Assembly (NCBI GenBank): GCA_965240325.2
Contig: OZ251222.1
Location: 3,162,001 to 3,226,000 of the forward strand
Reading direction: 5' to 3'
From: Rebecca billardiae RCC1528
Lineage: Eukaryota; Protista; Haptophyta
DNA length: 64,000 nt
The notes under the pieces are model-generated. The model was not told where the DNA came from and did not search any database. It worked only from the letters and a program-made list of their open reading frames with translations. The translations under genes and the position numbers were made by a program. Of the stretch, positions 2,887 through 51,713 are shown piece after piece (the first letter of the stretch is position 1; the number at the start of each line of letters is the position of its first letter).

Positions 2887-2928
2887 CAGCAGTGCTGATA
2901 TGAGTAGTGAGTGCTTGACGAATTTAAG

Positions 2929-3128
<200 letters not shown>

Positions 3129-17245: not shown

Positions 17246-17467
17246 CGCCGCGCGCAGCGCCGCGCGGTGATGATGCAGCGGCTGCAGGTGACCGACTGCC
17301 ACTCCCACTGGCGGCGGCATCGATATCATCGACGACTACAATCGAACTACATCAGCGCGCATCAGCAATCATCACATCGTATCAGGCGCTGCGCGTTATA
17401 TTGGTCACGCGCGCGCAATGTTATATCGTCATGTTCATCGTATCATCATGTTAAAATTATTATGCCG

Positions 17468-17470
<3 letters not shown>

Positions 17471-17543
<73 letters not shown>
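17471..17543. repeat. (TA)n microsatellite abutting the left edge of the mobile-element region
   Basis: Directly visible. Confidence 0.97.
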
Positions 17544-17550
<7 letters not shown>

Positions 17551-18979
17551 GCACGGCCCCCCCCGAAAGGTCTGAGCGTGAGCGAAAGCCGGGGGGGGGC
17601 GGCGCACGTGCTCCGCAAAATCAAAAAGAGGATGCGCGCAGGATTTTGGGGATTTTTGTGGGTGGCCTTACCGTACGTATGAGTGGATTTCGCTGCCAAT
17701 GATTGCGTTTGTAGTAGATGCTAATTTTAACGATAGTAACACTTAGGGGAATGCCGGGTGGAATAGCATATAACACCAGCCGTGTGTTCGAACATTCCGT
17801 CATAGTAAGATGCTTGAATTGTAAGAGCCTGAAACAGCTCGCCAACCATAGAAAAGAGAGGTTGAGTCAGATTTTATGTCGCTTGAAGTAAAGAATTATT
17901 ATGCCGGCATCTGCACAGTGCCGGAAAACTGCTCAGGGTGACGTTTTAAGTTGTCCGCACCACTAGTCGAATCATCGGACAATTCTGAAGCGGTGCGCCT
18001 AAATTCGGCGCACCATAGGCGCGTCGAATCGTGGCACAGACCTTGGTAGCAGGCCACACCTGAGCGCGCTGCGCGCGCCGACGCGCGCTCGGCGCGGGCA
18101 AAAAATCATGCGCCGTTGGCATTACGCAGCCCCGCGCAGCGCTGTGCTCGAGCTCGGCGGCGGCGAAAGCGGGCGGGCGCACACGGCGGTGCCCGTGCGC
18201 GCTGCTCCGAGCGCAGCTGCGGCCACCCCGGCGGCATACCGCCGGTCGAGGGCACGAAAACCGATTTTTCGGGAAAATGCAGAGCAGCGGCGCCCGAGCG
18301 CGCCCGAGCTCGTCGCAGCACAGTCTCCTGGTGGCTGCGCCCCGTGAAGCCACGCCACGCGGGGCGCTGGCGTGCGCGTGGCCTGCGCCCACCGTGCGCT
18401 GCCCGATCATGGCCGTCGACCGCTCCGAGCGCCTCACCACGCGTGCTCGAGCCCACCGATACTGACGCCCGAGCACGGTGCCGGCAGCGCTCGCAGGTGG
18501 GCGTCGGAGAAAACACGCCGGCCGAACGAGCTTGAAGCGTCCGCCGCGATGCCAACGGCAGCGGACGACGTGCGCGCCACCTCGGCGCCAGTCGCCCAGC
18601 CCTTGCGCGGCGGTGCGGGCTCGCTCGTTCGCCGCCATCAGCTGCGCGCGCGCAGCCCGATCACTGCCCGCTGGTTCTGTTGTCGAGCAGCTGCGGCCTG
18701 CCACGCGCACTGCCGGACATTGAGCCACAGCGCGAGCACGCGCCTCGTCTGGCACGCGCGAGCACTCAGCATCGTGCGTGGCCACCATGACGCGCCCATC
18801 TGCGCCAGCAGCGATGAGCACGCCGCCGTTCAGCTCGCATCGGGCTCGCTCGCGACGCAGCAACGCGCGGCCGTAGCGGCAGCAGCGGCGCCGTCGAGCA
18901 CGCGCAGCAAACAAATATGCAGCGCGGGCGAGTCGACGGTCTGGAAAATGCGCGATCACGCCACAGCAGGCTGGCAGAG

Positions 18980-19660
18980 CCCGCCCGAGCTGCAGCATGC
19001 CGTAGGTGCTGCCCCAAGCTCTCGACTGCCCGTAAGCGGCGGCATGTGCGGCGGCGCCGGCGGCGGCCATGCTGCCACGCCGTTGCGCGCCGCGGGGCGC
19101 CGTCGGCACCTCTGTGGTGAAGCGCACAGAGCTCGAGCCCACGGGGGCTGGCGACCGTCAAACCGACACCCCATGACGCGGGGCTGCGTGCGCCAGCTGC
19201 GCGCACTCCGTGGGCCCACCTAGCCCGCTCGAGCAGCTCGCCTTGGGTGCGCGCAGCGGCTCGAGCACACTGGTATGGGACGCCTGCCTGCGGTGCCGCC
19301 GAGCACATGCGGCCGACGGTCACTCAGCACGGGCGACTCGACGGCGGCGAGCAGGCGCGACGGCCTCGCCGCGCCGCGGAAAAGCCTGCCCGGGCTGCAG
19401 CACGCCGTAGGAGCAGCCCAGCGCCCTCCTCCGCCCTCCAGCTTCGGCGCGCGCAGCAGGCCCGGCGGCGGCCATGCTGGCGTGCCCAAGCATGAAGATG
19501 GGCGCGGCCGGCCGCGCCGTCGCAAAGCGCGCAGAACTCGAGCTCGGGGGGGCGGACGGCCGCCAAACTGGCGCGGCAGGACGTGGCACTGCGTGCGCCA
19601 GCTACGCGCACCCGCTGCGCCCGCGTGGCCCGTGCGAGCGCCGCGCCTCGAGCACACGCA
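18980..19660 (+). repeat. Diverged tandem duplication, ~405-bp period (18980-19270 / 19385-19660)
   Basis: Collinear anchors in both copies: GCTGCAGCAyGCCGTAGG, GGCGGCGGCCATGCTG, CTGCGTGCGCCAGCTrCGCGCAC, CTCGAGCACAC. Confidence 0.75.
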
Positions 19661-19967
19661 GCTGCTCGACACAGCCACGGCAGTGTGGCTTGTGCGCGTG
19701 CACGTGATCAGTCTCAGCTCTGAGGCGCGCGCTCAGGAGGGCTGCGGCCGGGCCGAGCGCGATCTGCGCGGACGGTACAGCCTGGCGGCTCATGCCAGCC
19801 AGCCCAAAGCCCGCTCCGCCATCCGCGTCATGGCGCTCCAGCCTCTCGCGTGCTGCGCTGCAGCCGCGCTCGGCAAAGACGTCGCCCAGCCCGCCTTGCA
19901 CGCGGCTGAGCAGTGGCAGCCAGGCGAAGCGTCGTCGCGGGCGAGGCTGCGCTGGGTGATGCGGCTC
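19585..19967 (+). repeat. Left arm of a long degenerate inverted repeat; right arm at ~31908-32365
   Basis: GTGATCAGTCTCAGCTCTGAGGCGCGCGCTCAGGAGGGCTGCGGCCG (from ~19704) is the reverse complement of the sequence ending ~32223; similarity continues on both sides. Confidence 0.85.
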
Positions 19968-22073
19968 GGGTCGGTGGGCAAGTCGCACCCCGCCGTCGGT
20001 CGCCTCCACGCCTCAGGCTCGCTCGAGGTCAAAGACAACTGCGCGGCGCGGCGTTTGCGCGGGCGGGCCGCGGGCGTGGCGGGGTGTACGCGTGCAATGT
20101 CACAGCCTCCCACACAATTTCAGGAGGGTGAGACGCACCGCCAGCGGCACCCGCACACAATCCCACCCTGCGCGAGCCACCTGCCGTGTCGACTGAAGCA
20201 TCAGGCTCGGGCGCAACCGCGGGCGGTGCATGCAAGAAGCTCGCGAAACGCACCGCGCGCGCCGTGAGGGCGAAAGGAGAGCACCCGTCAGGGCGGCGAG
20301 GAACTTGCCCAGCGCCACGCGGAAGACGACCCCAGCCCGCGTCGACGCATAGTCGGGCCCGCGAGCAGCCTCGTCGGTCTTCGCCGAGTAGATCGCGCCG
20401 CGAGCCGAGGCACCGCTCGTTTGAGGCTCCGTCCGCCGCGAAGTCGCGGCTTCCACCCGAGTTCCACTGTCCGGCCGAGACCGGATTCGCTGACTCGAGC
20501 TGCGGACCGTCCGAAGCGTCACGGAAAATTCCAATCCTGCACTGTGTGAAGTCATGATTCATGAACCGTCGCTTCTCAGTGGCGGATATCATCAGGTTAA
20601 GGCCGTTATTAACTCGTTAAGCCCCTTGTTAAAAGCCCCTTGATTACCCTTGATTCATACACGGGTAATATCTTTTAAAGCCGAAAGGCGCTCAAAATAC
20701 CCAAGTGGGCACTGGGTGCCGGGTGGCCCGCGAAGTAAAGTACAGTTTACTATTCTGGAAACCCACGAGAACAAAGGCACGACTTCACGCTGGGGACCAG
20801 CCCGTCGCGGGCCTTTATTTGACGCCCACTCACGTGTCGGTCACATAAGCGCAATTCGCGTACCCGCTTACGCGCGCGATAGGGCAAAAGCCGCTCGTCG
20901 TTCGGTCAAAAACCGCTCGTCGTTCGGCGCTTTGCGTGCTCACATTCGCGCGAATCGCATCGGCCCATTATTCGTCGTGTCGCGAGTTCACACATGTCAC
21001 GAGCGAAAGGGCGCGTTGATAGAGGCACGCGGGTATCATCTTGCATTGGACTACGAGCATCGGAGCAACCTCGCGCGGCCTCGCGTCGACGACGTCCCGT
21101 GAAGGACGCCACGACGACAGGCGGGTGAGCCCACTGCGGCGCCAAGCGAGCGACGCGGGGCGCGCGGCGGGCGCACGCGCGAGGCTGCCCACCACGCGCA
21201 CGCGCGCGAACCCGCCGGCTCGGGCGACACGCGCCGCCTCAGCTCGAGCACGAGCGCGAGGCGTGGCGCCGGCTCGCCGTGGCGGCGGAGGGCTCGACCT
21301 GCATTGCGCGCGACGAGCGGCTCGCCTGCGGTGCCAGCGGATGAAGCGGCAAGCCCGGCGGGCGCATACGCGCAGGTCCGCCCTCCACGCGCGAGCGCGC
21401 GACTGCGTGTTCCACGAGCTGCAGCAGGCGGCCGCGGGCTGGTCGGCGGCCGGCGAGGTCGGCGGAGTGCCGCCCGGCCCGCGTTCTCGCTTGGGCGCGG
21501 GCCACACTCTCACTCACAGCGCGGGGCGTGGTGCTGCAGACGGGCCGGTCATTGCAGCGCGCACTCCGTGGTCAGACGTGCACACGCGCGCGCGTCGTCA
21601 GCCCCGCCGCTGCGCCCCTGTGGCGCCCTTGGCAGCGTCGGAATTCCGAGCTCGAGCCACCGGCCGCGAGCTGCCATCGTGCGTTTCAGAAACAGGTTTC
21701 CAGCCCAAGTTGACGCGCAGCGCCAACCCATATGGCGGGCCGTTGGCGGGCCGTAGGTCCGCCCCTTGTAGTGCCCGGGAAAAAGATAAGAAAAAGAAAA
21801 TGAAAAAAGAAAATCGCCTCGCAAAGAAAAGAAAATCGCCTCGCTCACTGCCGGGTCGCTTCGCTCACTACCGGGCGCCCTCGCAGCTCCCACTGGGGAC
21901 GCTCGGCCGAAAACCATATGGCGCCTGGCGCGGAGCGCGTGGGCCGCGCGCGCCGAATCCAACGCCGGCGCGGACATCGCGCGAGGATTCCCTAGACGGG
22001 TTTTCGCCCGATTCGCGATTGCTGCCCTCGTCGTCTCGCGTGCAGTCGAACGGGGCCCAAATCGACCCGTTTG

Positions 22074-25000
22074 ATGCGGTACGCTCGGCGCGTTGACACG
22101 ATCGTGCGACTTGGGGCGATCCTCGCCCGACGTGCACGTCGAAAGCTCGCACCGGCCATAGCATCATGCGCTGCGCACGATGACCGCCTCGCGCGATCCA
22201 CCGTCGCGCGTCGGGCTCGGTGCGAGAAAGCCCTGATCACGAGGCGTCTCGCGGGCGGGAAGCGCCATCGCACGCGACGCAAGATTTGGCGCGGCCTTCT
22301 GAACACCATAACCGGAATCCACACACCGGACTGTCGCGTGCCCCGGTTGGGCAAGGTCGGGCGCATGCAAATCCGTTTGCTACGGTCGGTTGTGTTCCAG
22401 AGCGAGCGCTCATCATTCGCGCTCGCGAGCTCGCGGCCAAAGCCCAAAGATCGCTCGGCGCTCGGGGGCCCACGTCCGGCCTGCATGGCGTCGACGGTGG
22501 CCAATGCGACGGAGGGGCAGCGCAAAGCGACGTACGACGCGCACCGCACGCACCTGCTGGGTCTGCCGCCGTGGCAGGAACCGTATCTTGGCGAGTCGGC
22601 GACCCAGGCGACAACGCGCTATCGCCGATCCCAGACGAGCATCCGCAACGAGATGATACGCCGAGCGTGCAACATCGCCGCGCCATCCTCCACCATGGCA
22701 CGGGCGCTGCGGGACGAGGCCAACGTCGTGAAGCCGGTGACGCATGCGCTGCGCTTCGTGTGCCTGCTCGAGCAGCGCGTGCCCACCGTCGATCGCGAGT
22801 GGCACACGCTCTCGCACTGCGCGCGCGTACACCGCCAACAGCTCCTGATACCGCCGAACGTGCGAGTGCCGGACCTGTCGCGCGGAGCGGCGAGCGCCGA
22901 CGAGCGCTTGGACCTGGACGCGCTGTTGCGCAGCGTGGCGGCCGTGCACGACGCCGACGCGACCTTCGCCGAGCCCATCGTGCCCGGAGCGGACATTGGC
23001 ATCCTCGCGACACACGATCTCAGCTGGCGCCACGAGGAGATGCTCACGATCTCCTCTGGCGGATTCGTCGGCGGCGAGGCGCTCGACTACGTCATCGCCG
23101 TCGAGATGCGGCACATGCAGCGCGTACGCGCGCTCGCGCGGAGCCACGGGCTGCCCGCCCCGCCCCGCGTGCTGCACGTTCCCTCGTGGGTGTGGACCTT
23201 GCTCATGGGCGCGGGCGTGTACGCGTGGGAGAAGGTGGCCGACATCTTTGCGCTCTTCGACCTGAACGAGTACGACGTGCTCTCCTTCGTCATCAACCAG
23301 GACGGCAACCACTGGGCGCAGGGGCTCGTCGACTTGCGCCGCGAGATCATCGAGTACCGCGAGCCCCTGGGCGGAGGCGACATGATCGGGTTCGTCTCGA
23401 ACGTGCAGCTGCTGCTCGCCGACGCGCACGAGGCTCAGCAGCAGCGCACACCGCGCACACGCGCGCAGCGCGACCCCTCCACGTGGCGCGTGTTCGAGCG
23501 CGCGCGCGTGCGGCCGTTGACGATGGCGCGGCAGGTGCCGGGCACGGTGCACTGCGCGGTGCTCGTCTTCGCGTACGTCCTCGACACCGTGCGAGGCCAC
23601 GCGCCGTGCGGCATGAGCCAGCCCTTCGACCCCAAGGAGTGGCGGCGCTTGATGCTGCTCACGGCGCTCACGGGCAAGTCTTTTGCCGACGTGGCAGGGA
23701 CGTGCGCGCAGCCCGACGCGATGGCGACGTGTGTCGAAGGCGCACGCGAGTCGGCGCGCTCGCATCCGTCGCCGCATATCGCGCAGCGCGCCTGCGACCC
23801 CGCGCTCGCCGCGGAGACCAACGCCGCGGACGCGACAGCGAGCCCAGCCGCCCCCATCGCCGGGCTCCCAGCCGTTGCCGACGCCATGCGCGTGGACATG
23901 GAGGAGTCGTGCGACGCGCTCGGTGACGCCGCCGCGCCGAACCGCGGCACGGCGCCGCCGCGGCACTCGCGCGTGCTACGCTCGCAGGCGCCAGCGCACG
24001 GCTCGGCGCCATCCGCCCCGCATCCCACGCCGAGCGGCGCAGCGCCCGTGGGCGCCTTGCAGCCGGGCGCGCCGCCGCGCGCCGACGACCACGTCGCCGA
24101 GGAGCCGCTGAGCGACGACCAGGCCGATGCCACCGGCGTGACCAGCATGGCGGCGCCGCGACACTCGCGCGTGCTGCGCTCGCAGACGTCGGCGCGCGAC
24201 TCGGCGCTTTCCAGACCGCACCCCACGCCGAGCGGCGCCGCCCTCTTGGCCGCCTCGCAGCCCGGCGCGCCGCCGCCCACCGACGGCCAGCTGGTCGGCG
24301 ACCCGATGAGCGACGACGAGGCCGACGCCACCGGCGCGACGGGCATCCCGCCGCCGACTCCGGACTTCGACCCGCCGGAGCACGTGCAGGGGAGGATCCA
24401 CGCGAACACGCACTCGTGCGCAGCGATGCTCACCTTCAGCCGCGGCGAGGAGAAGCACGCCGTTGGCATGTGCACCGTGTGCCTGCAGGTGCGCAACATT
24501 GGCCACGACTCCGGCGCCGATCTGAGCGCACGCCCAGGGTTCAACACGGTCATCGCCGCGCCGTGGGACTGCCAGCCGCGCGCGCAGCGCTATCCGGGCG
24601 CGCCCAAGTCGCGCGTGATGTGCAAGATCTGCATGGCGCTGAACACCAGCGCGGCGCGGCGCCGCACGCCGGACAACAACGAGCTCAAGGCACACCCCTA
24701 CTCGGGCTTCTCCAGCCCCGCCGGCGACATGTCCAGCGACCTCCACCACAACAACATGCACTTCCTGCCCGTGTCCGAGTACCTGCTGCCGTGCACCGAG
24801 TTCGAGCTGCAGCTGCTGGGCAAGTACGCGTGCGCCGCCACCCTGCACGCGCTCCAGGGCGGCGCCGGCCTCGAGCAGCGCGGCTGCATCACCTTCCTCA
24901 TCGACGACGTGAAGGTGAGCCGCTGGCTGCCGCGCCTGCCGACGGACGTGGACTACGTCGTCGTCGTGCCCACCACCGCGAGCGGCGAGCGGCGGCTGCG

Positions 25001-28000
25001 CAAGCGCTACGTCGTGTCGCGCTCGCGGCTGGCGCTCGCCATCCGCTCGCTGTGCGTCGGCGTGCCGCAGGGGGGGCACGCCGCCGTGCCGCTCGGCGAG
25101 GCCGCAGCCAACTACGTGCGCTACCCTTACAACGACCACAACGGCGTGCTGACCGACACGGGCTCGGCGGCGCACACGCCCCTGCGCGGGCGCTTCTTCC
25201 GCCGCGACCGAATGCCCAATCCCGCGTTTCACGACGTGAACGTGCGCCACGAGAGCCTCGCCAGCCTCCCCGAGGGCGCCGTGCCCAACGACCTCTTCGT
25301 CGTGCGCGTGCCGCCGGGCCACCCGGACGCCGGCGCAGCCGACGCAGACGTGAACGGGCGCCCTCGGTGGACGCGCGCCGGCGACGACGCCGAGGTGGAC
25401 GCCGACGAGGTCGCGGGCTTCGTGCAGATCCCAGCGGACGTGGACGTGCACGAGGCCCTGATGCAGTCGCTCGCCGACTCCGTGGGCGAGGCCGCGCGCG
25501 ACGCCTACGTGCGCTCCGGCCGCGGCGTCGCCGCCGCCGCGCTGCAGCGCCGACGCGCAGCGCTCGTCGACCCGTGGAAGACCCCCGGCTTCTGGAGCGG
25601 CCTCTTCGTGCGCGTCTTCTCCGGCGGCGGCGGCGACGGCACGCTGTCCACCGAGAAGACGCTCGACGCGCTGCACTGGATCGAGCACGTCACGTGGGCG
25701 GCGCCCGGCCGCGTCGCCGCGCACCCGCTCGTCGGCATCGTGCTCCAACGGCTGCGCATGCAGAAGCAGGCGAGCGGCCAGGCGGCGTTTGGCATCAACG
25801 CGCACCTGAACGAGCCCGATCTGCCCGTCGAGACGATGCGCGAGCGCATGGAGGCCGGCGACGAGACGATCTTCAACGCGCTGTACGGCCTCACGGGCAA
25901 CGTCCCGGGCACCTCGTCCTCGACCAAGACCAAGATGAAGGAGATGCTGGCCATGTACCACGAGCGCACGTTCACCGAGGTGGAGAACATGGAGTGCATG
26001 CCGCCGTCGTTCGTCTTCTTCTCGCGCGCGTGCGCCGAGTACTGGTGGCTGCCGCTCGCGCGCGCGCTGCGCGACGCGGCCGCCGAGCACGCCACCGCCG
26101 CCGCCGCCGCGATGGGCAACGACGCCGCCGCGGCGCGCCGCACCACGCTCGAGCTCTGGGAGCACAAGCCGCGCGCGCAGCTGCGCGACGCCATCCGCTC
26201 GATGCCACAGATCGTCACAGCGTACTTCGACTGGCGCTGCGTGAACTTTCATAACACCGTCGGCATCCACGCGGACCACATGAACGACGCGATGTGGAAG
26301 TACGAGTACGCCGAGCTGCGCAGCTTCATCCACAGCCACGGGTGCGGCGTTTCGCACGCCGCCTCGCGCGCGGTCAACGGCGCGCGCGACAAGGCCGAGC
26401 GCGCGACGCGCGACGAGAAGGGCGAGGGTCGGCCGCCCGAGGAGCCCATCGACGCCGATGACGACGGCGCCCCCGCAGAGCGCGCCAAGAGCGTGCGCGA
26501 GTGGGACGAGACCTTCCGACGCCACTTTGCGACGCAGCTGCACGCCGTGCTGCACACGACCGCCGCCGACGAGTACGTGCACGACGACGAGCTGGGCTGC
26601 GAGGTGCGCCGCGCGGACGGTTGGTCGACCTGGCAGGTGGACTCCTACCACCCGGCCGGCACGACGTGGAACGACGACACCGAAGCGCACGAGCCCAACA
26701 CGGCGGAGTGGGGCAAGCCGGCGGGCACGGCGCGCGTGCCGCGCGGCGCGGCCCACCCGTGCGCGCGCACGCTGCCCGAGATGTACGGCTCGGAGGCCAA
26801 GCTCTTCCGGTGGCGCATCGACTCGTGCAACGCGTCGTGCATGCACACGTGCATGTGCTCGTACTGCCTGCACAAGGTGAAGGAGGCGATCCGCTCGGAC
26901 GAGGACGGCGAGACGCATTGGAAGTGCCGCTTCGGCATCGCCACGTTCGACAAGCGGCTCGTGGTCGCCGAGACGCGCGCCATCGACTCGGGCGACGGCC
27001 ACTTCGTGCAGCACGGCCGGCACTACCGGTACGAGAGCCCCACGGACTGTTGGCCACGGCTCGCACAGCCGCGCAGCGGAACGTCGTGGCAGGGCAACAA
27101 CGACACGAAGCTGATCATCGCGGTGGAGACGCGCGATTCGGCCGGCGACCTCATCTTCGAGCACGTGCACTACGTGTGCGACTACGCGTTCAAGACGCAC
27201 GACACGGAGGATCAGTGCCGGCGGCTGTACCGCAGCTTGCTCGAGCCGCCTGCCCTGCCGCCGCCGCCCACAGATGCCAACCAGCCGCGCGCATTGGCGC
27301 CGCCGACGACGGACGCGGACGCGAGCGACCCCACGGCCGCGACGGCGCACGCGACGACCGACGCGACGCCCCCGGCCGCCGAGCCCGGCCACGCTCTCGA
27401 CAGCGCACCGCCCGGCGCACCGGCCGCCGCGTCGCTCGGCGCGCCTAACGCAGGCGCCGCGCACGACGCGCCGGCCGCCGCCGCCGCCGAGCCGCCGCCG
27501 GCCGGCGACGTGCGCACCGCCGCCAACATCGCATACAGCTTTGCGCTGCGCGCCGTGGGCCTCGTGCCGCTCCGCCACCAGCAGGCGAACCACCTCAACT
27601 CGGGCACGCCGATCACGCGGCAGACGGCGCGGCCGGTGCGCGTCGGCATGGGCGGCGGCCGCGTGCTGCGCGCGCGCCCGACGGCACTGATGCCCAACGG
27701 CGAGCCCGCGCCGCGCCCGCCGACGTCGATGTGGCCAGCGTCGCGCGTCGAGGCCAAGAAGCCCGTCATGCAGCAGTACATCGACTACCGCGAGGAGCGC
27801 ATCGACGAGGGCTACTCCGAGTGGCTGAGCCTGCACGAGTGGCTCGTGCGTTGCCAGTGCGCACGCAACACGTCGCCGCCAGAGACGTGCCCGTGCCAGC
27901 GCAACCTGTTCGTGCAGGCGACGGGCGTCACGTACATGGTGAGCTGGCCGATGCAGCAAGGGTGGGCGACGATGCAGCTGCTGCTCCACTCGCGCAGGCG

Positions 28001-30617
28001 GTGGTTCACCGAGGCCGACGTGCTCGTCATGCTCGACGGCCAGCCGGCGGCGTCCGCGCACGACGCGCTGCTCGACGCGTGCTGGCTCGACGAGAACGAC
28101 GACGGCGAGCTCCGTCGGTCCGTCGAGTCGTGCGACACGCATGCGAACGAGCTGCCGTGCTCGCACGTGCCGCACGCGCGGGGCGCGCGCTGGGCGTCGG
28201 GCGAGTTCCCGCCGGGCGTCGTGGAGCTCATCAAGCACGCGCACACCGCGAGCACCTTCCGCGGGCGCCGGCGCGCCGCGCAGGCCGCTTGCGCGAGGCA
28301 GCGCGCCATGGAGCGGCGGCAACGCGAACAGGAGGAGCGCGCGCCAGCTGCCGACGCGCGCGACGCGGACGGCGAGACGGACGCCTCCGACAGCGAGCGC
28401 GACGACGGCGCCGATCGCGCGCGCACCGCCAACGATCTCGAGGCGCTCGCATCGGCGGCGCGCGTCGCGCCGGCGCTCGCCGGCGGCGCCGACGACGGCG
28501 TGGGCACGTACACAGTGCGACCCGCGCCGCCGGGCTTCAACTGGCACGCGGCGGGTCGCGAAGCGCTCGCGCGCGGTCTCGCCGCTTACGACTGTGACGC
28601 CCCGACGGCGCTCGCCGCGCTGGGCGCCGATGTCGAGCGCGCGCTGGCCGACCATCTGCCGCGCCAGCTCGCCTCGCGCGCGCACAGCGCACTCGCCAAC
28701 GTCGCCGGCCAGACGAGGCCGGGCGCGACGGCGAACGCCGCCGTGCGCACGGACGCGACAGTTCGGTCCTTCGAGCTCGCGCCTTTAGACGTGCCGCTGC
28801 TGCGAGCGTCGCCGAGCCAGCGCGCGGCCATCGCCGTGACATTGCTCTCCATGCTCCGACGGGCGACGAGTCCGACGACGAGCGGCGCCGCGCCGGACTT
28901 TCAGTATTCGCGGCTGCTGCTGCACGGCGAGGCGGGCACGGGTAAGAGCGTCGTTCTGCGCGGACAAGAGCGCTGCGCGCACCGCCTCTTCGGCGCGCGC
29001 CCCGCCGGCGAGCGCTGCGCCGGGGGACTCGCGCCCACGGGCGCCGCCGCGGTTTCGATGTCGCCGCGCGCGCGCACGGTCGCAAGCACGTGCCCGGAGC
29101 GCCTCGACCGGAAGAACGGCGCCGACGACGCGGGCAGCTTGAGCCTCGAGCGCGTCAACGCGCTGCGCGCGCTCGCGTGCGTCGACCAGGCGAGTGGCGA
29201 TCTGCGCTCGGCGCTCGAGCTGGTGCAAATCGACGAGTCGTCGATGCTCACGGCGCGCCAGTTCGAGAGCGTCGTGATGGACTTTGCGCAGGCGCTCGGC
29301 ATGCCCGTGCCGGCGGCGGCGCCCGGCGCGCGCCTCACGCGCATGCTGCCCTTCGATCAGACGGTAGCCGGCGACCCGTCGCAGCTCGACCCCGTCGGCA
29401 AGAACAACCTCGACTGGCCGCTCGCCCGGCTGCAGGGGCTGCAGCGGCTGGGCGGCGTGCGCTATCGCCAGGAGTTCGTGGACGCCATCGTGCTCACCGA
29501 GCAGAAGCGGCTGCAGCTCGTCGACGACGACGATCGCGCGCTGCAGCGGCTCCAACGCCACATGAAGCACGGGCTGCTCGACCGGCAAGACTTTGACTGG
29601 GCGCAGACGCGCGTGCTCGGCAACATGTCGGAGGAGGAGCGCGAGCTGTTCGAGCGCGTCGACGAGGTGATGCACGTGTGGGGGCGGCGCGCCGACGTGA
29701 ACGACGGCAACGTGCGCTGCGTCGACGCGCTGGCCGCCGTGCGCGACGAGCCGGCCGCCACAGTGCGCGCCACGACGAGCGTCGGCCGATGCCGCGCCTC
29801 GCGCGACCCGAACAAGCAGGTCGGGCAGCTGCCGATGTACACGCACCTCGCGCCCTCGTCCGTGCTCGTGTGCTGCGCGAACGGCGGCGGCTACCCCGAG
29901 CTGTGCGCGCCGTGCGGCATCGCCAACGCCACGCGCGGGACGTGCGTCGCCGCCATGTACGCGCCGGGCGAGGGCGCGCCCGAGCACCAGCCGGCGGCGG
30001 TCGTCGTGCACCACCCGACGTACAAGGGCGAGCCGATTGCCGCGGGCTGGCCGCCGACGTGGGTGGCGTACGCGCCCGTCGCCAAGGACTGCGACGCCCA
30101 CTGCTGCTCGCGCACGATGGTGCCGCTCGAGCCCGGCATGCACGTGACGTTCTTCAAGGTGCAGGGCATCACCGTGGGCGAGAAGGAGATGATCAAGCGC
30201 ATTGTCGTGCACCTCGACTTCAGCAGCGGCCTGAACACCGAGGCGCTCTGGCCCAGGTCGACGTACGTCGCCTTCACGCGCCCGCGCCGCGCGCGCGACT
30301 TTGCGCTCGCCGCCTCGCTCACGCTCGAGAACTTCATGGCGATCAACAACGCCGCGTGGCGCGCGGACGCCGAGATCGAGCGCCAGCGCGTCGCCGAGCT
30401 CGACGCCGCGACGCGCGCGCGCATGGCGCCGCACATGAGCGATGAGGGCTGGGTGGCGCTGCTCGCGCGACTCGACGCGGCCTGCGACGACGGCGTGCGC
30501 GACGCCGCGTGCGCTGCCGCCGCCGCCGACGACGACGACGATCGGCTCGCGTGCGCGCTCGACGGCTGCGCCTCGTGCGCAATCTGGCGCGTGGCGCGCG
30601 CCGACGGGCACGAGTAG
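22074..30617 (+). CDS. Ulp1-like protease - CxxC/DUF6570-like - HUH(Y2) Rep - Pif1 helicase polyprotein
   Basis: Protease: INQDGNHW..YREPL..RQVPGTVHC. Rep: FFSRACAE, KYEYAELRSFIHSHG, WQGNND..HYVCDYAFK. Helicase: LHGEAGTGKS, APTGAAA, IDESSM, GDPSQLDPV, LTEQKR, TFFKVQGIT, YVAFTRPR. No stops or frameshifts over 8.5 kb. True start may be ATG 22365 or 22485. Confidence 0.9.
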   Translation: MRYARRVDTIVRLGAILARRARRKLAPAIASCAAHDDRLARSTVARRARCEKALITRRLAGGKRHRTRRKIWRGLLNTITGIHTPDCRVPRLGKVGRMQIRLLRSVVFQSERSSFALASSRPKPKDRSALGGPRPACMASTVANATEGQRKATYDAHRTHLLGLPPWQEPYLGESATQATTRYRRSQTSIRNEMIRRACNIAAPSSTMARALRDEANVVKPVTHALRFVCLLEQRVPTVDREWHTLSHCARVHRQQLLIPPNVRVPDLSRGAASADERLDLDALLRSVAAVHDADATFAEPIVPGADIGILATHDLSWRHEEMLTISSGGFVGGEALDYVIAVEMRHMQRVRALARSHGLPAPPRVLHVPSWVWTLLMGAGVYAWEKVADIFALFDLNEYDVLSFVINQDGNHWAQGLVDLRREIIEYREPLGGGDMIGFVSNVQLLLADAHEAQQQRTPRTRAQRDPSTWRVFERARVRPLTMARQVPGTVHCAVLVFAYVLDTVRGHAPCGMSQPFDPKEWRRLMLLTALTGKSFADVAGTCAQPDAMATCVEGARESARSHPSPHIAQRACDPALAAETNAADATASPAAPIAGLPAVADAMRVDMEESCDALGDAAAPNRGTAPPRHSRVLRSQAPAHGSAPSAPHPTPSGAAPVGALQPGAPPRADDHVAEEPLSDDQADATGVTSMAAPRHSRVLRSQTSARDSALSRPHPTPSGAALLAASQPGAPPPTDGQLVGDPMSDDEADATGATGIPPPTPDFDPPEHVQGRIHANTHSCAAMLTFSRGEEKHAVGMCTVCLQVRNIGHDSGADLSARPGFNTVIAAPWDCQPRAQRYPGAPKSRVMCKICMALNTSAARRRTPDNNELKAHPYSGFSSPAGDMSSDLHHNNMHFLPVSEYLLPCTEFELQLLGKYACAATLHALQGGAGLEQRGCITFLIDDVKVSRWLPRLPTDVDYVVVVPTTASGERRLRKRYVVSRSRLALAIRSLCVGVPQGGHAAVPLGEAAANYVRYPYNDHNGVLTDTGSAAHTPLRGRFFRRDRMPNPAFHDVNVRHESLASLPEGAVPNDLFVVRVPPGHPDAGAADADVNGRPRWTRAGDDAEVDADEVAGFVQIPADVDVHEALMQSLADSVGEAARDAYVRSGRGVAAAALQRRRAALVDPWKTPGFWSGLFVRVFSGGGGDGTLSTEKTLDALHWIEHVTWAAPGRVAAHPLVGIVLQRLRMQKQASGQAAFGINAHLNEPDLPVETMRERMEAGDETIFNALYGLTGNVPGTSSSTKTKMKEMLAMYHERTFTEVENMECMPPSFVFFSRACAEYWWLPLARALRDAAAEHATAAAAAMGNDAAAARRTTLELWEHKPRAQLRDAIRSMPQIVTAYFDWRCVNFHNTVGIHADHMNDAMWKYEYAELRSFIHSHGCGVSHAASRAVNGARDKAERATRDEKGEGRPPEEPIDADDDGAPAERAKSVREWDETFRRHFATQLHAVLHTTAADEYVHDDELGCEVRRADGWSTWQVDSYHPAGTTWNDDTEAHEPNTAEWGKPAGTARVPRGAAHPCARTLPEMYGSEAKLFRWRIDSCNASCMHTCMCSYCLHKVKEAIRSDEDGETHWKCRFGIATFDKRLVVAETRAIDSGDGHFVQHGRHYRYESPTDCWPRLAQPRSGTSWQGNNDTKLIIAVETRDSAGDLIFEHVHYVCDYAFKTHDTEDQCRRLYRSLLEPPALPPPPTDANQPRALAPPTTDADASDPTAATAHATTDATPPAAEPGHALDSAPPGAPAAASLGAPNAGAAHDAPAAAAAEPPPAGDVRTAANIAYSFALRAVGLVPLRHQQANHLNSGTPITRQTARPVRVGMGGGRVLRARPTALMPNGEPAPRPPTSMWPASRVEAKKPVMQQYIDYREERIDEGYSEWLSLHEWLVRCQCARNTSPPETCPCQRNLFVQATGVTYMVSWPMQQGWATMQLLLHSRRRWFTEADVLVMLDGQPAASAHDALLDACWLDENDDGELRRSVESCDTHANELPCSHVPHARGARWASGEFPPGVVELIKHAHTASTFRGRRRAAQAACARQRAMERRQREQEERAPAADARDADGETDASDSERDDGADRARTANDLEALASAARVAPALAGGADDGVGTYTVRPAPPGFNWHAAGREALARGLAAYDCDAPTALAALGADVERALADHLPRQLASRAHSALANVAGQTRPGATANAAVRTDATVRSFELAPLDVPLLRASPSQRAAIAVTLLSMLRRATSPTTSGAAPDFQYSRLLLHGEAGTGKSVVLRGQERCAHRLFGARPAGERCAGGLAPTGAAAVSMSPRARTVASTCPERLDRKNGADDAGSLSLERVNALRALACVDQASGDLRSALELVQIDESSMLTARQFESVVMDFAQALGMPVPAAAPGARLTRMLPFDQTVAGDPSQLDPVGKNNLDWPLARLQGLQRLGGVRYRQEFVDAIVLTEQKRLQLVDDDDRALQRLQRHMKHGLLDRQDFDWAQTRVLGNMSEEERELFERVDEVMHVWGRRADVNDGNVRCVDALAAVRDEPAATVRATTSVGRCRASRDPNKQVGQLPMYTHLAPSSVLVCCANGGGYPELCAPCGIANATRGTCVAAMYAPGEGAPEHQPAAVVVHHPTYKGEPIAAGWPPTWVAYAPVAKDCDAHCCSRTMVPLEPGMHVTFFKVQGITVGEKEMIKRIVVHLDFSSGLNTEALWPRSTYVAFTRPRRARDFALAASLTLENFMAINNAAWRADAEIERQRVAELDAATRARMAPHMSDEGWVALLARLDAACDDGVRDAACAAAAADDDDDRLACALDGCASCAIWRVARADGHE

Positions 30618-30685
30618 CGTCGTTTTGTGGTGATCACAGCTTTAAACAATTTCAATTCGTGGCTTATTCGTCACGAATTCACGTC

Positions 30686-30725
30686 GCGTTCAGGTCGTCC
30701 ATCGCCGTCCAGACGACCTGAACGC
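30686..30725 (+). other. Perfect 14-bp stem-loop downstream of the RepHel ORF (candidate rolling-circle termination hairpin)
   Basis: GCGTTCAGGTCGTC-catcgccgtcca-GACGACCTGAACGC. Confidence 0.8.
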
Positions 30726-31191
30726 AAATGAATCATGACATCACACTCCGCCACCAGCACTGATGTTTAGCTCCGAGGACAAACCGTCACCGTCAGGCGG
30801 CGACGGCGTCACTCACTCACCGCGTCACGAGCACGCCGCCGTCGCACGCCTGATCAGTTGGCAGTGCGTGCGCGCAGTCGACGGCTCGGCACGATGACGA
30901 GTAGCACAGTGGGTGCAGGAATACACGCGCAATCACACTGTCGCTGAGCTCGCACCAGAGTCATCTGTCGCGTTAGTATTCGTCAGTGAGTCGGGTAGCT
31001 CACAATCATCTCGGTATGATGTCGCATTGTTATTCGTAGTCATCCTGCCCGTCAAACCGCTATTATAAATAAAAGGCGCGAACCCGCTGGGGAAATATTG
31101 CGACAGCACTGGCACGGCCCGCCGACCCCCCCGCCCGCCAGGGCTGAGTTTTATTAACGTGCACACTTGGTTAACATTTTACTAAGAATAA

Positions 31192-31222
31192 GAGACGCAC
31201 ACAGCTCAGGCAGGCGAGATTG
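31192..31222 (+). repeat. Dispersed repeat B; identical 31-bp copy at 61963-61993
   Basis: GAGACGCACACAGCTCAGGCAGGCGAGATTG at both sites, each preceded by an ACTAAG..AATAA-like sequence. Confidence 0.85.
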
Positions 31223-31907
31223 CAGTATCATAATATCTCCCTTGATGATGAGTACCGGTCGCGCGGGCAGGCAGTGGCAGGCCGGAGGAGTTGAGAGTGC
31301 TGAACCGAGGCAGCTCGGAGGGTGTCCACCGCCCACGCAGGCCGCTGCCGCACGATCGTTCAATCCGACAGACTCAGCGCAGGTGCGCGCAGCTGCGGCG
31401 GGTCCCAACGGCCGTCGGCATCGCATTCGTGCCTCGCTCACCCCGCGCGCCCCGCCCTGCCGACCCGCGTCCACGCGCGTGCGCGCCCGCGTCGCGCAGC
31501 CTTTTCGGTGCAAGCTCCGTTCTGCTGGTGTTCGAGACTGTGGCTGGCGCAGGCGCACGAGGAGAGGGCAGCGCGAGTGTCTGCGTGCTCGCTGCATCTT
31601 GCTGCGCGATGGTCCGCTCGTCTGCTCCCACGATCTCGACCGATCTCGTCTGGGAGCGGCGAGCGCACGATCAGCTTGCAGCTGCCAACACAGCGCTCGG
31701 CGTGAGCAGCCCGCGGGAGCGGTGGCAGTGACCGAGCTGCGCCGCACCGCCGGCCGCACGCGCGTGCGCCAGTTGGGTGGCGTCGTGGTCTCGCCTTTCA
31801 GCCGTTTCATCCGCCGCTCAGGCCGATTTTACGCCGTCAGCAGCCATTTGTCGACGCGCTACGCGTCAGACGGCTGACGAGCCGGGTGAGCCGCCTGTGG
31901 GCCGTCA

Positions 31908-32365
31908 AGCCGCATCACCCAGCGCAGCTTCGCCCGCGACGACGGCTTCGCCTGGCTACCACTGCTCATCAGCCGCGTGCTCGGCGGGCTCGGCGGGCGT
32001 CGTTCGGCCGAGCACGGCTGCCAGCGCAGCACGCGTAAGTAAGAGGCCGTGGAGCCTGGAGCGCCCCGACTGTGACGCGGATGGCGGAGGCGCTGGGCTT
32101 TGCGGGAATTGGGCTCGGGCTGCCATGAGCCGCCACGGGCTCGGGGCTGTACCGTCTGCGCAGATCGCGCTCGGCTCGGCCGCAGCCCTCCTGAGCGCGC
32201 GCCTCAGAGCTGAGACTGATCACGGGCCGAGGCGCACGAGCGACACTGCCATGCGGCTCGGTGTCGCCAGCCGCGCCCGCTGCGTGTGAGGCTCGAGGCG
32301 CGGCGCTCGCACGGGCTCAACGCGGGCGCAGCGGGTGCGCGCAGCTGGCGCACGCAGCCACGCGC
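31908..32365 (-). repeat. Right arm of the long inverted repeat (partner 19585-19967), carrying many small insertions
   Basis: Reverse-complement alignment by eye. Confidence 0.8.
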
Positions 32366-32787
32366 GGAACTAGCTAGGGCCGTGCGCCCTCAACTTCGTT
32401 GTTTACTACCCGAAGATCGGCGTAGCCGATCATGTTATTACGTCGTCGACGTTACGTCGTTACGAGGCCCGCCTGGCGGATGCCCGGATGGGATTGGGCG
32501 GATGGATCACTATTCACTCGGCGGATGTGCATCATGAGTAGCGGAATGTCCCCGCCGGGGCGGGGGCTAGACTAGTGGCCAACACGGGAAGCGGGCAGTC
32601 CCGGCGGCCCGCCCGCGGCGGCCGGCTCAATGCTGTCACTCACACGGACGGTGACACTCACAGTCACACTACGTCACGCGGCAGTCGCGGCACGCCACGC
32701 CCGCGGCCGTCCACGTCCGTCCTGCGTCCACTCGGCAGGCCCGCACAGCCCACACGATCACTGCAGACTGCTCGCCGTCGCTGATGA

Positions 32788-33699
32788 TCAGAGGCGAGCA
32801 CGAGGTCGAGACGCGGTGGAGGATGATGGCGTAGACGGCGAACCGACTTGCCCCGCATCGCTCTCAGACTGCTGCGAGGACCAAAACCGCGCCTGCAGCC
32901 GCTGCATCACCTGCACCCAGCGGTCAGGCTCGGCCGTCATGCGCTCCACGTACGAGGAGACCGACGGGTGCGGCAGGATGAGGAAGCGGCCGGAGCGCAT
33001 GCCTTCGAGGATGGCGTCGGCCACTTCTTCGGCGCTGAGCACGCCATCCGCGCCGGCCAGCGCGGACGCGGCGTGCAGCTGCCGGCTGGGGTCGGCGTTC
33101 GCCGTCATTCCGGTGCGCACCGCCTGCGGGCACACGCAGTGCGTGCTGATCCGACCGGCCGACTCACCGCCGTGAGACACGGCCAGCCAGCGGGCGACTG
33201 CCACTGCGGCCGCTTTCGAGACAGCGTATGGCAGCGCGCCGTGCTGCGTGAGCAGGCCCGCAGCCGAGGCGACGATCACGATGGAGCCGCCGCCCCGTTT
33301 CGCCATGCGCGGCACGAGGGCGCGAGCTGCCCACACAGGCTGCAAAGTGTTCACGCGCAGGGCGCGATCCCACGCCACAGCGTCCGCCTCGAGGCCGCCG
33401 ACGACGAGTATGCCTGCGTTCGCCACAAAGAGCTCCACGCCCGCGCGACCAATGCCGCGAGCCCAGGCCTCCGCCTGCTCGACGGCACCGAGCACGCTCG
33501 CCTCCAAGCCTGCATCGAAGGCGATTGCGAGCGTGTGTGGGGCGCCCTGAGTTTGACACGAAGCCGCAGTGGCGTCCGCCGAGCCAGCACTAAGGTCTGC
33601 GCACACTATGGGCCACCCACGCCTCGCAAGGGCGAGGCAGAGCGCCTTGCCGATGCCCGAGCCCCCACCCGTCACTAGTGCGACGCCGCTGACCGCCAT
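32788..33699 (-). CDS. Short-chain dehydrogenase/reductase
   Basis: VALVTGGGSGIG, ANAG, VASAAG, YAVSK (YxxxK), CPQAVRT. Confidence 0.92.
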   Translation of the reverse strand: MAVSGVALVTGGGSGIGKALCLALARRGWPIVCADLSAGSADATAASCQTQGAPHTLAIAFDAGLEASVLGAVEQAEAWARGIGRAGVELFVANAGILVVGGLEADAVAWDRALRVNTLQPVWAARALVPRMAKRGGGSIVIVASAAGLLTQHGALPYAVSKAAAVAVARWLAVSHGGESAGRISTHCVCPQAVRTGMTANADPSRQLHAASALAGADGVLSAEEVADAILEGMRSGRFLILPHPSVSSYVERMTAEPDRWVQVMQRLQARFWSSQQSESDAGQVGSPSTPSSSTASRPRARL

Positions 33700-33802
33700 C
33701 GCCGGCGGAGGATTGCGTTTCCGGAAGTCCGGATGACCCGGACACCCTGCACCGCCAATCCGCCATCGTTGTTCGACCTGTTTGCAGTTTGAGCGAGCTC
33801 GA

Positions 33803-36217: not shown

Positions 36218-36980
36218 ATGGCACCAAAGACGACGACCGCTGCGGCGAAGCCGACCGGCCCCAAGTACTCTGATCTCGTGAAGGAGGTGCGTCTAGCGCG
36301 GCGTACTCGGGGCGCGCGACGGTCGCCGCACCGTTCCACCTCTGCCCGCACGTCTGCTCACGCGCCGGCCCCGCGTGCCATTGCGCGCGCGAACGCGCGC
36401 AGGCGCTGCTTGCGCTCAAGGAGCGCAACGGCTCCTCGCTGCACGCGATCAAGAAGTGGCTCGCGACGAACCACCCAGCGGCGACGAACGCGACCGCGCT
36501 CAAGATGGCGCTCAAGGCGGGGACTGCCAAGGGCACGCTGCTCAAGGTCAAGGCCTCGTACAAGCTGTCGGCTGAGGCGAAGAAGCCGGTCAAGGCGAAG
36601 AAGCCCGTGAAGAAGGCGACCAAGCCGAAGAAGAAGACGACGAAGAAGCGCGCGCCGAAGAAGGCGGCCGAGGGCGCTGAGGGCGCCGAGGGCGAGAAGC
36701 CCAAGGCCAAGCCCAAGGCCAAGAAGACGACGAAGAAGAAGGTGGGATCTTGCGCGCGCGCGCACGACCCCAGCGATCTCTTTCTCACGCCTGTGCGGCG
36801 CGTACCGCGATCCTCCGGTTCGCGCGCGCGCAGGCGACGACGAAGAAGCCGGCGACGAAGAAGCCCGCGGCGAAGAAGCCGGCGGCCAAGAAGACCGCGA
36901 AGCCCGCGGCCAAGAAGACGGCCGCCAAGAAGAAGCCCGCGGCCAAGCCGAAGAAGGCGATCGCGAAGAAGACCAAGTAA
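36218..36980 (+). CDS. Linker histone H1; exons 36218-36286, 36403-36741, 36834-36980 (184 aa)
   Basis: PKYSDLVKE|ALLALKERNGSSLHAIKKW..LLKVKASYKL globular domain plus Lys/Ala/Pro-rich tail; two GT-AG introns in phase 0. Confidence 0.93.

Positions 36981-51674: not shown

Positions 51675-51713
<39 letters not shown>

Follow-up and report, generated by a model that had tools for sequence, protein, structure and literature searches.

A single open reading frame of 2848 codons with zero internal stops occupies positions 22071-30617 on the plus strand of the 64-kb window, which is the whole stretch of DNA analyzed here. All protein features described below lie on the same strand. From the N- to the C-terminus the predicted RepHel protein contains a Ulp1/C48-like domain, two CxxC pairs, a DUF6570-like region, an HUH/Y2 Rep and a Pif1-family helicase. 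An earlier sequence-only reading of this DNA had proposed an uninterrupted ORF of about 2,800 aa with this domain order, and every part that it named was found where it had been placed. Counted in 150-nt bins, GC3 of the RepHel frame stayed at 0.84-1.00 all the way from around aa 200 to the stop codon. Since GC3 just outside the frame is lower on both flanks (about 0.46-0.7), the frame is coding throughout and not an artefact of high GC. GC3 climbs between aa 50 and 200, and the probable translation start is therefore ATG 22485 (M139), which would give a product of about 2710 aa. From aa 761/776 to aa 2838 the ORF is collinear, in a single frame, with two of its relatives (L001 and L004). Exact-protein look-up of the RepHel ORF (two starts) and of four flanking ORFs in public assemblies returned no record, and a word-indexed protein search with the full-length RepHel protein returned no homologue. 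The 64-kb window contained no Rfam or tRNA matches.

The HUH Rep endonuclease domain extends over aa ~1190-1745 (25638-27305) as delimited by alignment with relatives, which it matched with E values of 1e-101 to 1e-10. The HUH motif is IHSH within RSFIHSHG (aa 1417-1424), in which H1421-S-H1423 is invariant in the relatives. The YxxxYxxK motif lies within HYVCDYAFK (aa 1700-1708), and Y1701, Y1705 and K1708 align with their counterparts. The two motifs are separated by about 280 aa, and the further Rep motifs SCAE, HPAG and LHxCxxYC are also kept in relatives. The Pfam family Helitron_like_N (PF14214) was matched by 38/58 sequences, comprising the window Rep and 57 relatives, with a best E value of 9e-27. 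The window's own Rep gave no match to PF14214, and its link to the family runs through the relatives. Modeling domain by domain with AlphaFold, a check named in the sequence-only reading, worked for the Rep (pLDDT 81.3, pTM 0.78), with the tyrosines on a helix and the HUH on a strand, and failed for the protease-like domain described below. Foldseek with the untrimmed Rep model found nothing in the PDB at E<=1e-3 and a single unnamed viral match in BFVD (E 3.8e-3). A search of PDB sequences with the Rep profile matched neither Helraiser nor any other HUH protein.

The SF1B Pif1-family helicase follows at aa ~2240-2790 (28788-30440), as defined by AAA_30 (E 2.8e-9) and by alignment with relatives. 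Its motifs are intact, including Walker A GEAGTGKS (aa 2286), DESSM, GDPSQLDP, KVQG and YVAFTR, and the alignment shows conservation of Walker A and of motifs Ia, II, III, V and VI. An alignment-based helicase profile matched PIF1 structures with E values of 4e-29 to 1e-20 and Helraiser (7lcc) with an E value of 9e-10. The ORF stops about 60 aa past motif VI, after a C-terminal tail (30441-30614) whose Cys cluster is conserved in aligned relatives. These alignments uphold the earlier description of a single-ORF rolling-circle transposase that joins a Y2 HUH Rep to a full Pif1 helicase. No AP endonuclease (Exo_endo_phos) was found in the RepHel protein at E<=1 to 10. The window protein reached the Pfam gathering score only with the P-loop models AAA_30 and AAA_19. 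Among the families that the sequence-only reading had named, Peptidase_C48 and DUF6570 fell just under threshold, while Helitron_like_N and PIF1 had no direct match from the window's own protein and were matched through relatives only.

Upstream of the Rep, two CxxC pairs (C801/C804 and C851/C854; 24471-24632) form a probable zinc finger that is kept in aligned relatives, and this region matched relative P0002 by BLASTP with an E value of 5e-10. The DUF6570-like region (aa 894-995; 24750-25055) carries invariant HNNMH and LPRLP motifs. PF20209 (DUF6570) matched the window at 22.1 bits against a cut-off of 24.3 (E 2.3e-4), and the homologous segment of aligned relatives matched it at up to 96.6 bits (E 2e-27).

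An exhaustive search of 1.84 billion representatives identified 135 relatives at E<=1e-3. The closest is just 36% identical, which bears out the earlier proposal of a distinct lineage. The long relatives scanned carry DUF6570, Helitron_like_N and PIF1. In two of them, P0073 and P0093, a single predicted protein combines DUF6570 with a more N-terminal OTU domain that passes the Pfam gathering score, and the OTU-DUF6570 linker is similar in length to the window's protease-RepHel linker. OTU was weakly matched in P0012 and P0081. An OTU domain was also suspected in the closest relative, P0002, on account of a GDGSC motif and was rejected, as Pfam gave no confirmation. By Pfam, AP endonuclease is absent also from the long relatives P0009, P0016 and P0051. 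DUF6570 upstream of Rep is described as a marker of HLE2 in PMC11417382. Because it has DUF6570, lacks an AP endonuclease and has OTU-bearing relatives, we assign the window element to Helitron-like group 2 (HLE2), Helitron2 type. A place in HLE2 and not HLE1 is indirectly favored by the OTU- and DUF6570-bearing relatives and by a Rep profile that missed Helraiser, an HLE1 element. The absence of an AP endonuclease also means that it is not a Helentron sensu stricto.

The sequence-only reading had placed a protease-like domain at about 23050-23680, and we located it at 22938-23705 (aa ~290-545) by profile, PDB, BLASTP and hhalign matches. Peptidase_C48 (PF02902) matched profile positions 79-150/217 with an E value of 4.6e-4 and 20.5 bits (cut-off 20.7). 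SENP1 chains made up 8/9 PDB matches, with E values of 0.07-0.2 and the His and Gln..Cys aligned. The third link is L008, the ORF of a metagenomic Ulp1 family protease that is itself a bona fide C48 (PF02902 E 2e-19). The window domain matched it by BLASTP (E 2e-7, 28% identity over 123 aa) and by hhalign (85.8% probability, E 5e-6), and the two share INQDGNHW. H414 (of HW), Q488 (the oxyanion Gln) and C495 are in register with C48. E431 takes the place of the catalytic Asp and, as in SENP1, follows the His at a spacing of +17, Ala stands where C48 has Gly after the catalytic Cys, and the Gln-Cys spacing is one residue longer than in Ulp1/SENP. The earlier assignment to Ulp1/clan CE thus stands as far as the predicted His, Gln and Cys are concerned and departs from the family at the Asp, which is replaced by Glu. 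Word-indexed search with the protease piece found no homologue, phmmer with the N-terminal 470 aa found no match in any of the 135 relatives, from which the N-terminal module is thus absent, and L008 as query retrieved only its own 90% cluster. On this evidence a very divergent Ulp1/C48-like cysteine protease domain is moderately supported.

The same residues could instead belong to a non-catalytic relic, either a pseudo-protease or a binding module, or the likeness to C48 could be meaningless, leaving an HLE2 whose N-terminus carries a long, lineage-specific extension. The score below the Pfam gathering threshold, the weak PDB E values, the Glu for Asp and the Ala for Gly after the Cys are all compatible with this, as are the lack of homologues in word-indexed searches, the occurrence of the region in 0/135 relatives and a single-sequence AlphaFold model (aa 280-560, pLDDT 37.7) that is unusable as evidence of fold. 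We nevertheless consider a relic unlikely. Three independent sequence links lead to C48, the His, Gln and Cys are in register, and the His-to-acidic spacing is that of SENP1. Glu at the acidic position has a precedent in adenain, a clan CE protease that uses His-Glu-Cys catalysis. Furthermore, GC3 is 0.88-0.98 over the domain, indicating that it has been maintained as coding sequence.

A low-complexity linker (aa ~550-760) lies between the protease and RepHel parts. Repeat analysis and translation of this Pro/Ala/Ser-rich region, between the protease and the zinc finger, revealed an in-frame tandem duplication of 2 x 198 nt (2 x 66 codons, 81% identical; 23947-24342, plus strand) with GC3 of 0.90-0.96. 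Such a long, duplicated linker would suit two proteins that are made separately, through splicing, internal initiation or self-cleavage, so that the fusion would exist at the DNA level only. The HELIANO report, in its available portion, does place C48 in ORFs apart from RepHel in other elements. Against separate products, the frame is free of stops and GC3 of the linker never falls below 0.84, while in P0073 and P0093 one and the same predicted protein carries both OTU and DUF6570, joined by a linker of similar length. Separate proteins are in our judgment very unlikely.

Taken together, we estimate at roughly three in four the probability that the locus is an apparently autonomous single-ORF HLE2 of the Helitron2 type with a divergent Ulp1/C48-like isopeptidase domain fused in frame at its N-terminus, as predicted from sequence. 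Several observations count against this explanation. The window Rep and helicase are tied to Helitron_like_N and PIF1 via relatives only. The Rep profile misses the Helraiser Rep, and the Rep model has no significant PDB neighbor. The C48 match is 0.2 bits under threshold, with a pLDDT of 38 and the Glu and Ala replacements. Further points against it are the single visible copy, a hairpin placed on the inner side of the right terminal repeat, the much longer outer inverted repeat and a strain difference at 32429, all described below.

Candidate ends of the element were found on both sides of the ORF as a 19-nt inverted repeat. The left copy, GTGTGAAGTCATGATTCAT, lies at 20544-20562 with a T before it at 20543, and the right copy, ATGAATCATGACATCACAC, lies at 30728-30746 with a T after it at 30747. 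No other 18/19 inverted match links the 5' spacer (19967-22484) to the 3' spacer (30618-31907), and the pair was equaled in 0/300 shuffles. Positions 20544 and 30746 are therefore given as candidate ends. The intervening 5' leader (20563-22484, plus strand) is non-coding, with no codon-position GC periodicity in any phase and, by the same measure, no second ORF with a coding signal. The start of the leader includes an AT-richer stretch at 20560-20700. Two hairpins follow the stop codon on the plus strand, as judged by DNA folding. The first has a 10-bp stem (30654-30679). The second (30686-30725; z = -3.3) has a perfect 14-bp stem (30686-30699 / 30712-30725) and a 12-nt loop, begins 70 nt past the stop and adjoins the right 19-nt repeat on its inner side. 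The 64-kb window contains one copy only, with no further copies of the RepHel gene or of the 19-nt ends, and the relatives' contigs stop short of their own element ends.

Repeat analysis also identified a long outer inverted repeat outside the candidate element, with a left arm at 19582-19966 and a right arm at 31908-32362. The mobile unit could then be the 12.8 kb from 19582 to 32362, bounded by these ~385/455-nt arms, either as a composite or TIR element that carries RepHel or as an older TIR element hit by a Helitron-like insertion. The arms are symmetric about the ORF, related ~385-nt units form a tandem pair at 18885-19673, and a strain difference in Logan contigs maps to 32429, about 65 nt beyond the right arm, and not to 30746. 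However, no DDE-type transposase and no coding signal other than RepHel lies between the arms, which have diverged to 79% identity including indels (96% in an 83-nt core). Searches turned up neither a target-site duplication nor a left-hand counterpart of the 32429 breakpoint. HLE2 ends are described in PMC11417382 as 12-16-nt repeats, and the inner 19-nt pair fits this description. A unit bounded by the outer arms is therefore distinctly unlikely, and we rank the inner pair above the long inverted repeat as the candidate terminal repeat of the element itself.

Within the boundaries of the proposed HLE2, a further question is whether the gene still serves transposition. It might be a domesticated, immobile host gene, or a relic that has long been resident as a single copy. 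The window has one copy, whose ends have no second copy there, and GC3 of the ORF (0.92) equals that of neighboring host genes (0.91-0.93), suggesting long residence. A stop-free frame is a weak sign of youth in 70% GC DNA, where an antisense ORF reaches 1569 aa. Conversely, every Rep and helicase catalytic motif is intact, and the unique terminal inverted repeat and the hairpins are retained. The 5.7 kb and 2.1 kb around the gene are non-coding and repeat-rich, as in a transposon landing zone. Domestication or a relic state thus seems improbable. The earlier description of a young, possibly active algal element is likewise no more than tentative, given the one visible copy and a codon usage equal to that of the host genes.

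The family to which the element is assigned suggests how it would transpose. The zinc-finger/DUF6570 region and the Rep would recognize the element ends, and the HUH-Y2 Rep would nick one strand and become covalently attached to it through tyrosine. The Pif1-type helicase would unwind in the 5' to 3' direction, and the displaced strand would be rejoined, with insertion at a T-T site. The most likely role of the N-terminal protease is that of the OTU/VTD deubiquitinase modules in other HLE2 transposases. Its substrate may be ubiquitin, SUMO or NEDD8 on the transposase itself or on host chromatin, replication or repair factors, and removal of the modifier would protect or enable transposition. 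We infer mobility, the element boundaries, and the activity and substrate of the protease. The earlier suggestion of a deSUMOylase or a polyprotein processor is speculation. Our own tentative proposal, which we hold to be possible and somewhat doubtful, is that the domain is an active SUMO- or NEDD8-directed Ubl isopeptidase needed for HLE2 transposition, with an origin separate from that of the OTU, VTD and UCH modules found in other HLE2 lineages. If so, convergent recruitment of different protease families against ubiquitin-like modification would have occurred repeatedly among rolling-circle transposons, and this lineage would point to SUMO/NEDD8, not ubiquitin, as the relevant host control.

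Eukaryotic genomes have been shaped to a large extent by Helitron-like transposons, and to our knowledge the role of the ubiquitin-type proteases that these transposons carry is not known. An unrelated Ulp1-type protease appears to fill the OTU/VTD position, which makes it more plausible that the transposase depends on de-conjugation by an enzyme of one family or another. With one ORF and one protease cysteine the element offers a compact test case. It also illustrates that very divergent HLE2 lineages in high-GC genomes slip past standard Pfam-based annotation.

Compared with Helraiser, a canonical Helitron (HLE1), the element shares the RepHel organization and the helicase profile match. It differs in a Rep profile that does not match the Helraiser Rep, in the presence of DUF6570, in the absence of a 5'-TC / CTRR-3' signature by the hairpin, and in having, at its candidate ends, T/T rather than A/T flanks. 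The protease-like domain resembles Ulp1/SENP in its HW catalytic histidine motif, the acidic residue at +17 and the Gln...Cys oxyanion/nucleophile motif, and differs in its Glu for Asp, a Gln-Cys spacing that is one residue longer and a score under the Pfam threshold. Ulp1-like genes are carried by some Mutator-like elements, where they are separate genes in DDE transposons, whereas the window domain is predicted to be fused to a rolling-circle transposase.

The closest parallels are with HLE2 elements (among them Helentron, proto-Helentron and FoHeli). Like these, the window element encodes in a single long RepHel ORF a zinc finger at the N-terminal side, DUF6570, an HUH-Y2 Rep and a Pif1-like helicase. 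Its candidate ends would add short terminal inverted repeats, T/T flanks and hairpins close to the 3' end. Unlike the other HLE2 elements, it has at most 36% identity to any relative found, a Rep and a helicase that are themselves below Pfam detection, and the gap of about 280 aa between HUH and tyrosines. Its hairpin lies inside the right repeat, whereas in the canonical layout, as given in PMC11417382 and PMC4067079, it follows that repeat. Helentron ORFs are known to contain in-frame VTD modules, sometimes with OTU, that are active on Ub/NEDD8 and not on SUMO (PMC9741609). As in these OTU/VTD Helentrons (PMC4067079, PMC9741609), the ORF is predicted here to encode, ahead of its RepHel part, a papain-like cysteine isopeptidase belonging to the ubiquitin/Ubl system, and relatives of the window element hold OTU at the equivalent position. 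The module itself is C48/Ulp1-like (clan CE) and neither OTU nor VTD. The HELIANO census, in its available text (PMC11417382), counts Peptidase_C48 as one of 20 domains that are stable components of Helitron-like elements and as one of the 17 that lie in ORFs other than RepHel. In both cases a C48 domain is tied to a Helitron-like element, and the difference from the cases in that text is that the window domain is in frame with RepHel under a continuous coding signal. The sequence-only reading had treated Ulp1-like proteases as better known from other DNA transposons, a background outdated by the census listing and by the VTD/OTU modules of Helentron ORFs (PMC9741609). The architecture has thus been described in part, since in-frame OTU/VTD modules are known, while the available census text places C48 in separate ORFs (PMC11417382, PMC9741609). 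Because OTU/VTD modules are known and C48 is already listed, we regard the element as an unusual version of a known transposon habit and not as a new kind of element.

The RepHel reading frame, which encodes the Rep and Pif1 helicase transposase, runs for 2848 codons without a stop (22071..30617, + strand), as the sequence-only reading had described. Since the window is ~70% G+C, long ORFs are expected from composition alone, for example a 1569-aa ORF antisense to RepHel, and the coding signal was therefore tested as G+C at the third codon position (GC3) in 150-nt bins along the frame. Every bin between roughly codon 200 and the stop has a GC3 of 0.84–1.00; values are 0.46–0.66 immediately 3' of the stop and 0.58–0.78 5' of codon 150. 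The high GC3 extends over the protease-like part and across the low-complexity linkers, with no dip marking an intergenic gap within the ORF. Because GC3 climbs across codons 50–200, M139 (ATG 22485) is the likely start codon. The adjoining host genes are equally extreme (GC3 0.91–0.93). Codon usage so close to that of the host speaks for a long residence of the lineage, and the evidence does not support the earlier description of the element as young, possibly active and of an algal lineage.

With the window's own sequence, AAA_30 and AAA_19, both P-loop models, were the only Pfam models to pass the gathering score; neither Helitron_like_N nor PIF1 matched. When aa 880–2079 were searched exhaustively with HMMER against 1.84 billion representative proteins, 135 relatives emerged, 55 of them at E<=1e-10, the best with 36% identity. 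DUF6570 and Helitron_like_N are both present (E<=0.01) in 3/7 long relatives scanned, to which P0016 adds PIF1; the remaining 4/7 possess one or two of these three domains. P0051, a relative scanned after the seven, possesses all three. In alignment A3 (Rep segments of the window and 57 relatives), 38/58 segments match Helitron_like_N, with a best E of 9e-27; the window's own segment does not. The closest two relatives, Logan contigs L001 and L004 (44% GC), follow the window ORF collinearly and in a single frame, starting at aa 761/776 and ending at aa 2838. The core between zinc finger and C-terminus is therefore intact, with no frameshifts. Intactness of RepHel is supported by collinearity and motif conservation, not by the mere lack of stops.

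The HUH histidines H1421 and H1423 (RSFIHSHG) are invariant in Rep alignment A2, and Y1701, Y1705 and K1708 (HYVCDYAFK) match the Y..Y..K motif of the relatives. Blocks SCAE, HPAG, W.PPEG and LH.C..YC are conserved between the histidines and the tyrosines, which are ~280 residues apart. In a confident AlphaFold model of Rep from 58 sequences (pLDDT 81.3, pTM 0.78), a helix carries the tyrosine motif and a beta strand the HUH motif. Foldseek found no significant structural neighbour of the model in the PDB and a sole hit outside it, one unnamed viral structure (E 3.8e-3). The Rep sequence profile did not reach the Rep of Helraiser, a group 1 Helitron-like element. Motifs and family homology point to the divergent Y2 HUH Rep proposed earlier.

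Helicase motifs common to the relatives (alignment A4) include Walker A GEAGTGKS (aa 2286), APTG, DESSM, GDPSQLDP, KVQG.T and YVAFTR. The A4 profile matches PIF1 structures at E 4e-29 to 1e-20, Helraiser (7lcc) at E 9e-10 and RecD at E 3e-5, in agreement with the full Pif1 helicase claimed from sequence. No AP endonuclease was detected by Pfam 3' of the helicase in the window ORF or the long relatives. The C-terminal tail (30441-30614; aa ~2800-2848) has no Pfam match and carries a DG..DA.C ... C..C cluster kept in relatives from Helitron-like group 2 (HLE2; A4), possibly a small zinc-binding module. The CxxC pairs and DUF6570-like region that had been noted are likewise kept in relatives (alignment A6): C801/C804 and C851/C854, with BLASTP E 5e-10 against relative P0002, and HNNMH and LPRLP of the DUF6570-like block. 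The Pfam DUF6570 score is below threshold (22.1 bits vs 24.3, E 2.3e-4, aa 894-995).

The claim of an N-terminal Ulp1/clan CE protease was upheld in part. One metagenome scan yielded L008, a 241-aa ORF that has INQDGNHW in common with the window and is an undoubted Peptidase_C48 (E 2e-19; JGI name Ulp1 family protease). The window domain matches L008 by BLASTP (E 2e-7, 28% over 123 aa) and by hhalign (85.8% probability), and H414, Q488 and C495 are in register with C48 catalytic positions. The whole ORF gives nine sequence hits in the PDB; eight are SENP1 chains, at E values of only 0.07–0.2, and their HW histidine and Gln...Cys motif line up with the window. E431 occupies the catalytic Asp position, +17 from the His, a spacing as in SENP1; in the adenovirus protease, a clan CE enzyme, the catalytic residues are His-Glu-Cys. 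Against the claim, Peptidase_C48 scores just below threshold (20.5 bits vs 20.7, E 4.6e-4, aa 397-468), Ala rather than Gly directly follows C495, and a single-sequence AlphaFold model (pLDDT 37.7) is too poor for a fold. Searches with the protease piece and with L008 gathered no homologues for an alignment. Taken together, the domain probably has a clan CE fold.

No counterpart of aa 150–620 was found among the 135 relatives, and L001 and L004 match the window from aa 761 onward only. Two relatives, P0073 and P0093, possess an N-terminal OTU domain above the Pfam threshold, with DUF6570 following several hundred residues later in the same protein; P0012 and P0081 have OTU hits below the threshold. 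The window ORF has the layout of these relatives, with the C48-like domain replacing OTU. In the Pro/Ala/Ser-rich linker from protease to zinc finger, 66 codons are duplicated in tandem and in frame, with 81% identity (23947-24342, +).

Two hairpins lie within 110 nt 3' of the RepHel stop, one with a perfect 14-bp stem in the DNA fold (30686-30725). Directly adjoining the latter is the right member of a candidate terminal inverted repeat pair (20544-20562 / 30728-30746; reverse complement, 18/19). The 5' and 3' spacers share no second pair of this kind, and shuffling produced none (0/300). The bases immediately outside the 19-nt repeats are T and T, and no further coding signal was observed between them and the ORF. 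[quoted passage not shown] The repeats, hairpins and T/T flanks appear to fit this pattern, although the hairpin follows the right repeat in the published layout and lies inside it here. Since it is defined from one copy, the element (20544-30746, 10.2 kb) remains a candidate.

A long outer inverted repeat (19582-19966 vs 31908-32362; ~385 and 455 nt) is 79% identical with indels, and 96% in an 83-nt core. Its arms bracket RepHel 0.6 and 1.2 kb beyond the candidate ends and have no coding signal. Two related units of ~385 nt stand in tandem on the left (18885-19269 / 19290-19673; 70% identical). The outer repeat may represent an older TIR element that received the RepHel insertion; alternatively, it may be the sign of a composite unit. 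Logan assemblies ERR14847148 and ERR14847151 contribute contigs L011 and L012, whose match to the window (99.8% identity) begins at 32429 and extends rightwards only; before this point they carry an unrelated 31-mer with an (AT)8 palindrome, which occurs nowhere in the window. Because the match stops there, strains differ structurally near the outer repeat, with a breakpoint at 32429 (within 32398-32431), 65 nt beyond the right arm. A second indel between strains, 37323-38622 (1.3 kb), is missing from L011; its left junction lies in a TA-rich tract, tatatgcatgtatatatatg, and its ends are unlike those of the RepHel element.

The adjoining host gene (33803-35677) encodes a 624-aa fusion of a DOT1-like methyltransferase and an FKBP-type isomerase (Pfam, Logan record), and a short-chain dehydrogenase gene lies on the opposite strand (32788-34086, -). 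Both have a GC3 of about 0.9 and are seemingly intron-free. An exact direct repeat of 31 nt, gagacgcacacagctcaggcaggcgagattg, at 31192-31222 and 61963-61993, could be a common regulatory motif or a piece of another repeat; a similar AT-rich 'tactaag..aataa' stretch stands just before both copies. Upstream of the element, a 5.7-kb non-coding, partly AT-rich region (16500-22200) holds a perfect palindromic (AT)n microsatellite of ~80 nt with a short inverted sequence at its flanks (17466-17551). Highly repetitive GCC/GAGCCC-rich coding-like arrays at 49900-53200 (9-15-nt sub-repeats, higher-order periods of ~470 and ~660 nt) probably encode, on the minus strand, a repeat protein rich in Gly and Ala; ORF 50869-51597 within them has GC3 0.93. 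A Lys/Ala/Pro-rich, KKPAAKK-type coding repeat (36300-36980) looks like the tail of a basic nuclear protein, histone H1-like or otherwise, and 2891-3177 is a long (AG)n / GAGAGGGA microsatellite array.

The evidence is best read as an HLE2 element of Helitron2 type, apparently autonomous and with a single ORF. By analogy with its family, Rep would nick DNA by the HUH-Y2 mechanism, the Pif1 helicase would drive 5'->3' unwinding, and the strand would be transferred into T-T sites. The C48-like domain most plausibly plays the part of OTU and VTD modules in other HLE2 transposases. VTD domains within Helentron ORFs act on ubiquitin and NEDD8, not on SUMO, and the authors argue that de-conjugation from different protease classes benefits Helitrons (PMC9741609). 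Candidate substrates here are SUMO, NEDD8 or ubiquitin, and candidate targets the transposase, host factors or the polyprotein. Overall, the earlier observations on the sequence were confirmed and their interpretation only in part. What appears new is a very divergent HLE2 lineage with an in-frame C48 module absent from every relative found. Protease modules on Helitron-like transposases are already established, and Peptidase_C48 is listed as one of 20 domains that Helitron-like elements stably include, and as one of the 17 reported to be encoded outside the RepHel ORF (PMC11417382). No description of an in-frame Ulp1-RepHel fusion was found in the full-text literature. The fusion is therefore a variant of an established Helitron-like habit: in the published elements C48 is reported in ORFs separate from RepHel, whereas here it is in frame with RepHel.
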